Sequence record: OQ363659.1
DNA length: 64,000 nt
Reading direction: 5' to 3' (one strand)
Part shown: positions 2,912-15,375 of the stretch, piece by piece
How the letters are laid out: every line of letters begins with the position of its first letter
How positions within the stretch are numbered: the stretch's first letter is position 1
Made by a program: the position numbers and the translations under genes
The notes under the pieces: model-generated
The model's database searches: none
What the model was told of the DNA's origin: nothing
The model's input: only the letters and a program-made list of their open reading frames with translations

Positions 2912-2965
2912 GTTGCTTCGCACCTACGGTGTACATTGAAAGGGTTTGATAGTGCTAAAACCATT

Positions 2966-3517
2966 TTATCTGGTAGAGGAATCTCCTTGGTCGTGAAGGA
3001 CGTCGACAATCAGATCCGACAGCGTATAGATGTCGAAGTACACATGCAGCATCTTGCGTTGCCCATAAGTACCCTCGATAGTTTCGAGAATACCACAGTG
3101 CGCTTGTAGCAGTTGACGCAGTTGTTCCAGACACTCTTTGATGTTCAAGTGTCCATGTACCGGATCGTAGAAGTAGTTATCCAGATCGACATCAGCTTGA
3201 TGCATCAATCCAGTCCGGGTTACGTATTCGATCCGAGAGTCTTGCTCATTAGCGATTGCGTCATTTGCATCCATCAATACCTGATGCAATTGAGCAAAGT
3301 TCCGATGCCGCAGTTGTCCGACGTGTCCCATCACATCACGAATGGCCAGACCATCCAGTAATGACATATCAAACAACCGCCAGAATTCTTTGAGTTTGAC
3401 GGGGTAGTCTTCAGGTTTGCAGTTTGCCCCGTCGATGTTGTCGAGGACGTCTGCATAGGTTTCAAGCAGGGAATTACGGCGCCAACGCCTGTAATAGTTG
3501 ATGATCTTCGAGAACAT
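2966..3517 (-). CDS. Conserved hypothetical jumbo-phage protein
   Basis: 183-aa ORF with GGAG RBS. Confidence 0.7.
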   Translation of the reverse strand: MFSKIINYYRRWRRNSLLETYADVLDNIDGANCKPEDYPVKLKEFWRLFDMSLLDGLAIRDVMGHVGQLRHRNFAQLHQVLMDANDAIANEQDSRIEYVTRTGLMHQADVDLDNYFYDPVHGHLNIKECLEQLRQLLQAHCGILETIEGTYGQRKMLHVYFDIYTLSDLIVDVLHDQGDSSTR

Positions 3518-12193: not shown

Positions 12194-12225
12194 GTGGTGT
12201 TACTCCGCGGATTAAAGTTACATAA

Positions 12226-12248
12226 GGTTGGTACCTGAGGCACCAACC
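12226..12248 (-). terminator. Hairpin followed by TATG, probable terminator plus late promoter
   Basis: GGTTGGTGCC-TCA-GGTACCAACC stem then TTATG upstream of gene 12193. Confidence 0.5.
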
Positions 12249-12253
12249 AAACG

Positions 12254-12535
12254 TTAAAGGGTTTTGAGCATTTGTGGTGTGACGATCTTTGCTGGAATGG
12301 TTTTACGCTTTTCTTGCCAAGCCGCTTTAATGACTCGGTGATAACCATCCAACGTAACCCATTCACCTGTAGGAAGCTGTGTGACAATAATCGGAACACT
12401 GATGTCAGCAGCACGCATGCGTTTGACATCGTAGTCATCATCGATCATCCACGTAACACGCTTGAGATCGAAATCAACAACGGGAGTGTTACGTGTCAGG
12501 TCCAGTAAGGCATCCACACTGTAGGTTTTACCCAT
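12254..12535 (-). CDS. ParB/Srx N-terminal-like domain, probably expressed as a -1 frameshift extension of 12586-13992
   Basis: PIIV...TLDGYHRVIKA motif; no SD near ATG 12535; frame open and protein-like upstream to the slippery site. Confidence 0.7.
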   Translation of the reverse strand: MGKTYSVDALLDLTRNTPVVDFDLKRVTWMIDDDYDVKRMRAADISVPIIVTQLPTGEWVTLDGYHRVIKAAWQEKRKTIPAKIVTPQMLKTL

Positions 12536-12585
12536 GTGCGTAAATGTGCTATCGGGTCCCTCACTGTAAGCTTCGTTAGATGTGG

Positions 12586-13992
12586 TTACTTTCCCTCGGC
12601 ACGGATGTGGGCAGCGATCATGGCATCGGCAATCGCACGACGTGCTTTACATGCACGCATACCGTGTTCTACCAGACCAGCCCAATCGGAGTTCAATACA
12701 GATCGCAGATAGGTAGTCACGATCTGACGTACTTCAGGAACGACCTCAGTTTTCTCCAGATCCACTTGCAGCTGTTCAACTGCATGTTCGATTTTGCCTT
12801 TGACTTCTTCGAGTTCTTCGATGTTCTCGTAGGTCAGCATTGCACGATCCAATACCTTCCAGCAATCATCACGGGAGATGACTTTGAAGTCAGTCGAATC
12901 GGGCTTATCATAGTCACCATCGACCAGTTTGAAACCGCCGCCTTCTACTTCCAGAACCTTGTTAGACGCACCTACCGCAGTAGACAACTTCTTAACAGGA
13001 TCTTTCTCAACAGCTTCTTTGATACGGCCACCAGCTTTGGTATCGGATGCCAGAGCAGACGAGATAGCTTTGATTCGGGTGAGGGTAATAGCTACCCAGT
13101 TCTGAGAGATCGAGCGCAGTTGGCTGTCTTCCCACCGACCAACGCCCTGCCAATCGTTCTCAACCGAGTTGATGTAAGCAGCTTCTGGTACAGAGATCTC
13201 CTTTGGAAGTGGCTCCAGCTTAACCGGTTCAGGCTTACGCTCTTCCTTCTCTACCTTAGGTGCTGGCTTCTCATGGCCGATAGCTTTGATAGCAGCAGCG
13301 GTCTTAGTGCCTTCCGCACCTTCTTGGTCCAGCTTAACCGAACTTGGATTGGACGATTTAGCTACCCCCAACAGGAATTGAGTTTTAGCTTTCTCTTTGG
13401 TGAAGAGCTTCTTGATCTTACCGAAGAACGACTTCAGTTCATTCCAGCGCTTCTTGATCCATTCCCAGAACTTAGCCCAAACTTCTTTAGTCTTACCTTT
13501 CAGCTTAGCCAGTTTGCCAGTGGCTTCTTTCTCAGCTTCTTTGGTATGGCCGATACGCAGTGGACCAGCATCGTCATCGATAGCTTCCAACGAGGTAGTC
13601 AGCTTAGAGAAGAACTTCGGATACATGCTTTTCAGGTCATGTGCGATAACCGATGCAGTCGCAGCTTCCAACCCGTACCGAGTCGAGCCACGCAGAATTT
13701 CCAGGTAAGCTTCAGTCGATGCACAAGCTTCATCCAGACGCTCCATTTGTTTATGGATAGCCTCGCCTTGACGTTTGGAGGCTTCATCAATAGCAGTGAA
13801 GTCTTTACCATCCACTTCTACTTCGTAAGCAGCTTCCGCTACATCGCCTTTACCAGAACCATCATCGGCTACATCTTGCACTTCATTTTTACCCAGCGAA
13901 GAACTGGTTTCTTTTACTTCGACAGGACGGGCAACGCCGTCCTCCGATTCCAGGCTAGCGATCAGCTTGGTGAGTTTAACTTTCTTAGCCAT
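12586..13992 (-). CDS. Internal head protein paralog
   Basis: LIASLESE, YGLE, TSLE protease-type sites; WAKFWEWIKK helix typical of the family. Confidence 0.8.
   Translation of the reverse strand: MAKKVKLTKLIASLESEDGVARPVEVKETSSSLGKNEVQDVADDGSGKGDVAEAAYEVEVDGKDFTAIDEASKRQGEAIHKQMERLDEACASTEAYLEILRGSTRYGLEAATASVIAHDLKSMYPKFFSKLTTSLEAIDDDAGPLRIGHTKEAEKEATGKLAKLKGKTKEVWAKFWEWIKKRWNELKSFFGKIKKLFTKEKAKTQFLLGVAKSSNPSSVKLDQEGAEGTKTAAAIKAIGHEKPAPKVEKEERKPEPVKLEPLPKEISVPEAAYINSVENDWQGVGRWEDSQLRSISQNWVAITLTRIKAISSALASDTKAGGRIKEAVEKDPVKKLSTAVGASNKVLEVEGGGFKLVDGDYDKPDSTDFKVISRDDCWKVLDRAMLTYENIEELEEVKGKIEHAVEQLQVDLEKTEVVPEVRQIVTTYLRSVLNSDWAGLVEHGMRACKARRAIADAMIAAHIRAEGK
12589..12595 (-). other. -1 ribosomal frameshift slippery heptamer G_GGA_AAG
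   Basis: GCC GAG GGA AAG TAA at the end of the internal head gene; identical to the lambda G/GT slippery site; -1 frame open for 111 codons. Confidence 0.7.
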
Positions 13993-14001
13993 GATGATTC
14001 C

Positions 14002-15375
14002 TTACTCGGCTTTGCCAGCGGTGGCAGCGACGTTCTCGTAGAAACCTACGAGTGCTTTAGTGGTGGTGTTGAGGTAGCCCAGATAGCTAACGGAGAAGCC
14101 CAGAGCACACAGTACGTACGAAGACATGAACTTACCGAACGGAGTACCTTCCATAGCGATTTCACTGAGGAAACCACGGAGGTCATTCGCTACAGCGTCA
14201 CGACGGTTACCGATATCCAGCAGGGACTTGGTACGAGTGATACCTTGTGCCAGTTCTTGTGCACTAGGAACTTTCACTTCTTTGGTAGGTTCACTACCTT
14301 CGACGCGTTCCAGTTTAACGGTAAGTGCTGAGCTCAGCTGTGTACTGACGATCTTAGGATCTTTCAGTTTGTCGTTGTGGTAGGTCAGGATAACCTCACG
14401 GCCACCTGGAAGTTCGGTAGTCTTAACGATCGACTTGCCTTCTGGATCACGTTGTACGCCAACAGTCAGAGCTTCAGGCAAGCACTTACCGAAGGTACCA
14501 GCCAGGTCTTTGAACAGACCGTTAACGATACCCAGCCATTCGTCTTCGTCTTCCAGGTTAGTATCTTTGACCTTAGCCTTGGTGCTGCGAACGAGGTCGA
14601 GGATAGCCTGTGGCCATTTGATCATCATACCTTCAGAAGCAGCCAACAGGGCCTGAACGGATTCGCCGTTAGAACCTACGATGTCACCGTTAGCAGTCAG
14701 CGATTTCAAACCACCGTAGTTAATGGCAGCGCCTTCTTTGATGCCACCAGCTTTGATGATCTTCTCAGCAGCTTCCAGACGCTTGGTGAGTTCATCACGG
14801 TTAGTGGACATGAAGTTCCAGGCGTTCATGATACCTTCGATCAGTTTCTTGATCGCTTCAACGATACCTTTACCTACAGCTTTAGCACCGGACTTCAGTT
14901 TGTCCAGGAGTTCCAGCGATACAGTCATACGACCGACTGGTGCATCAAATGATTCCAGAGCCGGAACGGTTTGAGCGAAGAACTGAGCATCATGACGACG
15001 CAGACTGATTTGAATAGCCTTAGCCAACGAGCTAGGGACGGATTCGTTACGGTCTACGTATTTGGTAACTTGACCGATGTGGTGTTCGAGGGCAGCTTTA
15101 CAAGCTTCCATCTTGGTGATGTCTTCACCGACCTGTACGCCTTCATTGATAGCGTTTTGGATAGCTGGGGTAACACCATCTGAGTCACCAGCTTTAACGG
15201 TATCAGCAGCAGTAGCAGCTTCGCCTTTCGAATCGGCTTCAGCAGTCGGTGCTTCTGGGTGATCTTTGGTGGCCGAAGCCGACGCATTGGTTACATCTAC
15301 TTGGCGAGCGACGCCATCGCTATCTTCCAGGCTTGCAAGAATGGAAGTGAGCTTATGGGTTGAGTGCTGTGGCAT
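14002..15375 (-). CDS. Internal head protein paralog
   Basis: ILASLEDS N-terminus nearly identical to the neighbour, ALEHH...ISL block, VSLE site. Confidence 0.8.
   Translation of the reverse strand: MPQHSTHKLTSILASLEDSDGVARQVDVTNASASATKDHPEAPTAEADSKGEAATAADTVKAGDSDGVTPAIQNAINEGVQVGEDITKMEACKAALEHHIGQVTKYVDRNESVPSSLAKAIQISLRRHDAQFFAQTVPALESFDAPVGRMTVSLELLDKLKSGAKAVGKGIVEAIKKLIEGIMNAWNFMSTNRDELTKRLEAAEKIIKAGGIKEGAAINYGGLKSLTANGDIVGSNGESVQALLAASEGMMIKWPQAILDLVRSTKAKVKDTNLEDEDEWLGIVNGLFKDLAGTFGKCLPEALTVGVQRDPEGKSIVKTTELPGGREVILTYHNDKLKDPKIVSTQLSSALTVKLERVEGSEPTKEVKVPSAQELAQGITRTKSLLDIGNRRDAVANDLRGFLSEIAMEGTPFGKFMSSYVLCALGFSVSYLGYLNTTTKALVGFYENVAATAGKAE

Follow-up and report, generated by a model that had tools for sequence, protein, structure and literature searches.

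A predicted −1 frameshift at a stop-adjacent A_AAG site joining an internal head protein to a ParB/sulfiredoxin-like domain in jumbo phages

Pseudomonas phage D6, a 307-kb jumbo phage whose host is P. syringae DC3000, probably makes one of its internal head proteins in two forms, the longer of which would carry a ParB/sulfiredoxin (Srx)-like domain translated in the −1 frame. We studied 64,000 nt of its sequence (OQ363659.1; hereafter the window, to which all positions refer), in which the open reading frame (ORF) for a phiKZ-type internal head protein, the ParB/Srx-like ORF that follows it and their neighbour genes all lie on the minus strand, and in which GenBank enters the two ORFs as separate hypothetical proteins (Table 1). 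Comparison of the junction between the two ORFs across related phages suggests that some ribosomes slip by −1 at the last codon of the head protein gene, so that an internal-head-protein::ParB/Srx-like fusion of 579 residues (468 + 111) would be made beside the 468-residue protein. We assign this reading a probability of about 80%. A sequence-only reading of the window had proposed such a fusion, made at a lambda-type slippery site; the fusion gains support from an open −1 frame in 17 lineages and from selection on the codons that would link the two proteins, and the lambda-type label gives way to a different description of the site.

The junction in D6 and in related lineages

The upstream ORF of D6 ends GCC GAG GGA AAG TAA, so that the heptamer G_GGA_AAG, formed by the last two sense codons and the preceding base, touches the stop codon. 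Between 12646 and 12257 the −1 frame contains no stop; the first −1-frame codon after a slip would be GTA (12589), and 111 codons run from there to the stop, so both the abutting heptamer and the long continuation into the ParB-like ORF were correctly described in the sequence-only reading. No promoter or terminator was found on the coding strand between the two ORFs, and no tRNA genes were found within the window. Within one genome, a slip site followed by an open −1 frame is not improbable. Among the 73 ORFs of at least 150 aa in the window, 3 end in A_AAR plus a stop and 16 have a −1 frame open for at least 100 codons past the stop; about 0.2–0.7 ORFs would be expected to combine both traits by chance, and the head protein ORF is the sole one that does. 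The case therefore rests on conservation across lineages.

Seventeen lineages, defined by distinct junction or linker DNA and identical in gene order, were drawn from GenBank phages (D6, RVTF4 and Psa21), from IMG/VR contigs and from metagenome contigs reached through protein clusters and a metagenome scan. In all 17, the upstream ORF ends in a Lys codon (AAG or AAA) with an immediate stop (TAA, or TAG once), and the domain ORF, which lies in the −1 phase, stays open through the junction. A_AAG or A_AAA directly precedes the stop in 15 lineages, and a perfect X_XXY_YYZ heptamer touches it in 8: G_GGA_AAG in four (D6, L025, L032 and L038), C_CCA_AAG in two (RVTF4 and L021), A_AAA_AAG in L017 and A_AAA_AAA in L028. 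The remaining junctions read T_GGA_AAG (L033), A_GCA_AAG (Psa21), G_GCA_AAG (L015 and L036), C_GAA_AAG (L011), A_GAA_AAG (L013), T_TCA_AAG (L014), G_GGG_AAG (L019) and A_AAG_AAG, the last with G_GGA_AAG one codon earlier (L030). By this comparison, nothing about the junction is invariant except the Lys codon with its stop and the −1 phase. Of the conservation anticipated for homologues, the open −1 frame was found throughout and the full heptamer was not; because A_AAG or A_AAA plus stop is kept in 15 lineages and the perfect heptamer beside the stop in only 8, 'shifty-stop A_AAG site' is a better label than 'lambda-type'.

The conserved phase and Lys codon stand in otherwise divergent surroundings. 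Apart from these features, the last 5–15 upstream codons are free of constraint, with a ratio of non-synonymous to synonymous substitution (pN/pS) of about 0.9–1.0, and the C-terminal tails that they encode vary between lineages in both length and sequence. In Psa21, L017 and L028, the upstream ORF is common to that of D6 only over an N-terminal module of around 140 residues, and the C-terminal parts are non-homologous. In three lineages, a −1-frame stop stands just 3 codons 5′ of the junction, so that any shift there would have to occur within the final upstream codons.

Coding in the linker and rival routes to the domain

Between the proposed slip and the annotated ATG lie 18 codons of the −1 frame, here called the linker, whose DNA we compared in 15 frameshift-type lineages. 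Third-position entropy in the −1 frame was 19.7, versus 6.7 and 7.2 at the other two positions, and over codons 8–18 all 11 third positions varied, compared with 4 first and 3 second positions. The pN/pS ratio was 0.23 for linker codons 1–18 and 0.10 for codons 8–18, against 0.26 for the annotated domain; the two other frames of the linker are either interrupted by stops or have a ratio of 1.8. This pattern of substitution indicates that all 18 codons are translated in the −1 frame.

The linker also appears to be part of the domain. A full HMMER scan returned 825 representative homologues. In alignment A1, Tyr8, Glu10 and Thr15 are at least 90% conserved among distant homologues that can be aligned over the linker, namely Erwinia phage Huxley gp11, EL gp075, Xoo-sp14 gp29, PCH45, PA5oct gp343 and the Ralstonia phage FLC4-3B and RP12 proteins. 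Standalone members of around 110–125 aa match the profile from positions 2–8, the match beginning at their own residues 2–13, and phrog_17560 (1e-24) begins at about D6 residue 3. The alignment, the profile scan and the PHROG match thus agree that standalone homologues extend N-terminally over the linker residues, an extension to which the sequence-only reading had drawn attention. In an AlphaFold2 (AF2) model (mean predicted local distance difference test score (pLDDT) 80), residues 1–9 are disordered and β-strand 1 comprises residues 15–18, paired with a strand at 21–24; because this strand precedes Met19, a start at Met19 would delete it.

A sister lineage, L018, with 58% identity, has the domain gene as a standalone and provides a picture of an independently initiated version: its ATG coincides exactly with the place of the first post-slip codon and is served by a GAGG Shine–Dalgarno sequence (SD). 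The L018 gene occupies 2940–3348 of a 234-kb IMG/VR contig in a different, unannotatable gene context, its ATG 2 nt after the stop of the preceding ORF, and it may represent a stage that preceded or followed the gene's capture by the head-protein cluster.

If the GenBank annotation were correct, the 93-aa ORF would start at ATG 12535 and the conservation upstream of it would reflect a regulatory element at the nucleotide level. This ATG is annotated in the record and kept in 12 of the 17 lineages, and the sequence-only reading was right that no other start codon precedes it: it is the sole ATG, GTG or TTG of the D6 −1 frame before codon 25. The same reading found no usable SD for it, and we agree, the nearest GAGGG lying about 21 nt upstream, whereas an SD stands 5–10 nt before the ATG in 6/6 neighbouring genes of the cluster. 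Met19 is replaced in the other five lineages, by Gln (CAA) in three, Leu (CTA) in one and Glu (GAA) in one. The annotated start would, in addition, leave unexplained 18 upstream codons with codon-periodic substitution and a pN/pS of 0.10–0.23 that can be aligned to the N-terminal residues of hundreds of standalone homologues, and would remove β-strand 1; a conserved RNA structure, such as a regulatory element might have, was not found in the junctions. We consider an authentic start at ATG 12535 very improbable.

A less remote alternative is that ribosomes terminate at the upstream stop and re-initiate in the linker, or initiate there non-canonically, giving a free ParB/Srx-like protein with an almost full N-terminus and no fusion. 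The upstream stop adjoins the linker, translational coupling is common in phages, and the standalone gene of L018 shows that the unfused protein can work; in three lineages, moreover, an ATG, GTG or TTG at linker residues 5–7 was taken as the start by gene callers. However, 12 of the 17 lineages, D6 included, have no such codon 5′ of Tyr8 in the open −1 frame, and in D6 the printed codons of that stretch also lack CTG, ATT, ATC and ATA. The occasional starts within the linker are all without an SD, and 5′ of them lies Ser4-x-Glu6, which is invariant and under selection. Re-initiation, finally, needs neither the conserved A_AAG nor the −1 phase. On balance we regard it as unlikely, though less so than the other rival explanations.

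Slippage of the RNA polymerase at a run of A residues could instead generate a subpopulation of mRNA with the two ORFs in phase, and two lineages (L017 and L028) do have runs of 6–7 A at the junction. D6 and most other lineages have only 3–4, far under the run length needed for transcriptional slippage, and the conserved zero-frame phase of A_AAG beside the stop is relevant to translation but not to transcription; we judge this explanation slightly less probable even than the annotated start. Least probable of all is that the domain ORF is a decaying, start-less gene or the product of an assembly error, without function, for which nothing speaks except the absence of a start codon: the arrangement was seen in 17 independently sequenced lineages, and the pN/pS values of the domain ORF, which is intact, and of the linker indicate selection on both. 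Within the frameshift reading, the event may be +2 instead of −1, with both of which the sequence alone is compatible.

The proposed slip and its relation to known recoding systems

In the mechanism that we propose, the ribosome would shift back by 1 nt while the Lys tRNA occupies the final sense codon (A_AAG) and the stop is next in line; it would then decode GTA, the first of 111 codons in the −1 frame. The Gly and Lys tRNAs would slip in tandem on G_GGA_AAG in D6, and a single tRNA would slip on A_AAG in lineages without the full heptamer; the adjacent stop, slow to decode, would be the only conserved stimulator. We infer the slip itself, tandem or single-tRNA, from these sequence features. 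The minimal −1 site is Z_ZZN, of which A_AAG has been extensively studied, and only one Lys tRNA is present in roughly half of bacteria (PMC5009743). The locus has an in-phase slippery sequence, an open and selected −1 frame without its own start, and a site and phase conserved amid divergent flanks, as expected of a programmed −1 site; a stimulatory element is a common but not obligatory trait of such sites.

Several observations weigh against this interpretation. The canonical heptamer is missing in about half of the lineages, and the final position is G_AAG in two (L019 and L030), of which L019 is without an obvious alternative shift site yet has an upstream in-frame ATG without an SD. Three lineages carry an ATG, GTG or TTG in the linker upstream of Tyr8, so that re-initiation could contribute there. 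A search of 15 junctions with RNAalifold for a conserved structure downstream of the site gave 0 pairs; the single-sequence fold of D6, which begins 22 nt downstream, was not significant (z = −1.7); and inspection by eye of the 15 nt 5′ of each junction revealed no conserved SD-like stimulator. With neither a conserved structure nor such a stimulator, the efficiency of the shift may be low. The D6 paper reports only SDS–polyacrylamide gel electrophoresis and does not mention a frameshift, and the packaging, protease cleavage and ejection proposed below are drawn from motifs and analogy. The in-frame ATG of L019, 16 codons 5′ of the junction, and an ATG in the linker of L021 were judged fortuitous, being without an SD and not conserved.

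The sites of the D6-type lineages have close counterparts among characterized recoding signals. A_AAG itself is shift-prone in E. coli and the heptamers G_GGA_AAG, C_CCA_AAG and A_AAA_AAG are highly so, and the same slippery Lys codon AAG after A occurs in dnaX (A_AAA_AAG), in IS1222, which uses G_CGA_AAG, and in the incidental site of B. subtilis cdd, which uses A_CGA_AAG (PMC5009743). Lineages with the tetranucleotide alone resemble cdd and IS1222. Unlike in these three systems, the D6-type site is always the last sense codon, with the zero-frame stop as its 3′ neighbour, no conserved stem-loop, pseudoknot or SD-like stimulator was found at the junctions, and the context is a phage head protein gene.

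As in lambda G/GT, the proposed −1 shift lies near the 3′ end of a morphogenetic gene and would yield a minor, C-terminally extended product in a fixed ratio (PMC5009743). The proteins differ, however: lambda G/GT sits between the major tail and tape-measure genes, whereas the D6 site is in a cluster of PF12699 internal head protein genes, on which ground membership of the lambda-type G/GT chaperone family was rejected, and lambda G and GT are absent from virions, whereas we propose that the D6 fusion is packaged. T7 gene 10A/10B offers a second likeness, a shift near the end of a head gene that adds a C-terminal segment to some molecules (PMC5009743). There the protein is part of the shell; in D6 the carrier is an internal (ejected) protein, and its extension is an autonomous, widespread enzyme-like ParB/Srx domain that is encoded by a standalone gene in other phages.

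The appended domain, its carrier and a packaging hypothesis

We compared the model of the −1-frame product with known structures. The top Foldseek match in the PDB was sulfiredoxin (E 2e-4, probability 1.0, template-modelling score 0.46–0.55), followed by the N-domains of Noc, ParB, PadC and SbnI, and the viral relatives in BFVD are named ParB/Sulfiredoxin. On the modelled structure, the domain has the ParB/Srx α+β fold, in agreement at fold level with the identity first suggested for it. Asp81, Gly82, His84 and Arg85 (Asp81-Gly82-x-His84-Arg85) are invariant in alignments A1 and A2, and an active-site role has been described for the Arg of D-G-x-H-R-type motifs (PMC5512222). At the sequence level, the D6 domain had no Pfam match at E ≤ 0.1, its relatives gave only sub-threshold matches to ParBc_2 or phrog_1033, and a profile search of PDB sequences returned nothing significant (E 0.83). 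Curated sequence models therefore do not reach the domain, and its membership is at superfamily level only.

Homologues of the domain occur in several protein contexts. In PA5oct gp343, which its record lists as a structural protein identified by electrospray ionization tandem mass spectrometry (ESI-MS/MS), the domain is the C-terminal half, in frame, an indirect sign that such a cargo may be present in virions; in Ralstonia jumbo phages it stands at the C-terminus of proteins of around 670 aa annotated as RNA polymerase beta-prime; and elsewhere it lies within polyvalent-type proteins with ADP-ribosyltransferase (ART), poly(ADP-ribose) polymerase (PARP)-like or lysozyme-like domains. Among the top 150 representatives, no in-frame fusion of an internal head protein to the domain was found, the in-frame fusions being to other carriers only. 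ParB/Srx domains are recurrent in polyvalent proteins that are packaged in virions and injected, in which they are predicted to act as DNases or nickases regulated by nucleoside triphosphates (NTPs) (PMC5512222).

The carrier is a recognizable member of its family. The upstream ORF matches PF12699 at 37.6 bits (cutoff 27), and its residues 23–462 cover profile positions 53–458 of 462 in phrog_6807, 'internal head protein'; since this match is nearly full length, the stop of the upstream ORF is the normal C-terminal end of the family. Another family annotated 'internal head protein', phrog_8282, is also among the matches, and three more PF12699 genes flank the ORF. The N-terminal module of around 140 aa (13573–13992, minus strand) is conserved, and the C-terminal tail is variable and always ends in Lys. 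In Psa21 and L028 the module is 43–56% identical to that of D6 and contains two conserved S-x-E-A-[YFI] motifs; L028 has it twice. Little follows the module before the junction in Psa21 and L017, so the carrier can approach a bare 'propeptide'. The surrounding cluster is evidently often remodelled: Psa21 gp217/gp218 (L003 4874–5972) are ORFs of 187 and 180 aa with an 8-nt overlap, their D6 counterpart is two internal head protein genes of around 460 aa (12586–15375), and other relatives have a pair of around 185 and 451 aa at that place.

The linker contains a further motif, Ser4-x-Glu6 (12572–12580). It does not vary among the 15 lineages of the linker DNA comparison, in which residues 2, 3, 5 and 7 do, and it recurs in the two lineages added later (17/17); standalone homologues lack it. 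It resembles the two S-x-E-A-[YFI] motifs of the head protein N-module, and phiKZ-type prohead proteases cleave after S/A/G-X-E (PMC5694885), suggesting that the domain may be released inside the head at Ser-x-Glu. Among in-frame fusions, the residues immediately before the conserved Tyr are A-x-E, a phiKZ-type protease motif, in FLC4-3B gp43 (L007) and RP12 ORF042 (L010), and I-x-E, a T4-type motif, in PA5oct gp343 (L005), and standalone homologues have neither; this distribution is consistent with protease release in several phage groups.

These motifs suggest a route by which the fusion might be used. The N-terminal module of the head protein would carry the fusion into the prohead, and the prohead protease would cut after the Ser-x-Glu of the linker, freeing a ParB/Srx-like protein of around 105 residues whose N-terminus, after the cut at Glu6, would be that of the standalone homologues. 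The freed domain would then leave the head together with the DNA and serve as an early effector that binds NTP and is directed at DNA. We tentatively suggest, and hold it clearly less probable than the slip itself, that recoding is a dosing device, by which a small, constant fraction of the copies of an ejected inner-body protein would bear an NTP-dependent, DNA-acting ParB/Srx-like domain that is freed at Ser-x-Glu, injected and active before phage gene expression.

The proposal has precedents in T4, in which proteins fused to the C-terminus of IPIII or of its targeting sequence (CTS) are packaged, processed and delivered (PMC9026906), and in polyvalent proteins that are packaged in virions and contain ParB-like domains, such as P1 DdrB; in both, a head-internal carrier or propeptide loads the cargo (PMC9026906, PMC5512222). 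The logic proposed for D6 is shared with them, in that a prohead protease cutting after Glu would free a cargo that is injected with the DNA, and ParB/Srx is a recurrent cargo. The T4 and P1 cargoes are fused in frame, whereas the D6 fusion would depend on recoding; the D6 domain has no Pfam ParB match at the sequence level, and its packaging and cleavage are a proposal.

The mechanism invoked here is known; what would be new is its context in an ejected internal head protein, the autonomous ParB/Srx domain that it appends and a stop-adjacent A_AAG signal without conserved structure. We found no proteomics for D6, Psa21 or RVTF4 in the literature, no paper on RVTF4 and none on a frameshift in internal head protein genes. 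The GenBank records of all three phages, like the D6 paper, treat both ORFs as separate, so that, if our reading is correct, the domain gene is mis-annotated in each as a start-less truncated protein of 93–96 aa, and the true products would be a fusion of about 64 kDa and, if it is processed, a ParB/Srx-like protein of about 12 kDa. Known phage frameshifts are mainly in tail chaperones and shell decoration, and this would be a conserved one in an ejected head protein. If recoding does act as the dosing device suggested above, the variable C-terminal halves of the head proteins and the domain appended by frameshifting would be exchangeable 'payloads' carried by one shared N-terminal targeting module. 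For jumbo phages, the locus suggests a candidate for an early effector that would enter the cell along with the DNA, and a modular loading route, and its 17 natural variant sites could be used to relate slip-site sequence to efficiency.

Table 1 Features of the D6 locus, with positions in the 64,000-nt window
Feature	Position	Strand	Evidence or remarks
Whole predicted recoded unit (internal-head-protein ORF and −1-frame ParB/Srx-like ORF)	12254..13992	−	Architecture recurs in 17 lineages
Upstream zero-frame ORF, 468 aa, phiKZ-type internal head protein family	12586..13992	−	PF12699, phrog_6807
Putative recoding signal closing the upstream ORF, G_GGA_AAG then TAA	12586..12595	−	Conserved core A_AAG plus stop
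Linker, 18 −1-frame codons 5′ of the annotated ATG	12536..12589	−	pN/pS, entropy, alignment, AF2
ParB/sulfiredoxin-like domain (by model), residues ~8–109 of the −1-frame product	12263..12568	−	AF2, Foldseek, BFVD, phrog_17560
GenBank-annotated ORF, 93 aa, WDS62225.1	12254..12535	−	ATG 12535, stop 12254–12256, −1 frame relative to the upstream ORF
Downstream intergenic element, hairpin and invariant leader	12194..12253	−	Marks the 3′ end of the two-ORF unit

The intergenic element that marks the 3′ end of the unit separates the ParB/Srx ORF from the next internal head protein gene. It occurs once in the window, with no such element between the two ORFs, and consists of a hairpin with a 10-bp stem at about 12226–12248 followed by an invariant stretch of around 27 nt that ends in the GGAG SD of that gene. 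The hairpin does not fit the canonical T-run type of terminator. The whole element is near-identical in six relatives whose coding DNA is only about 70–80% identical, and it may act as a terminator, as a processing site or as an element of a late leader.

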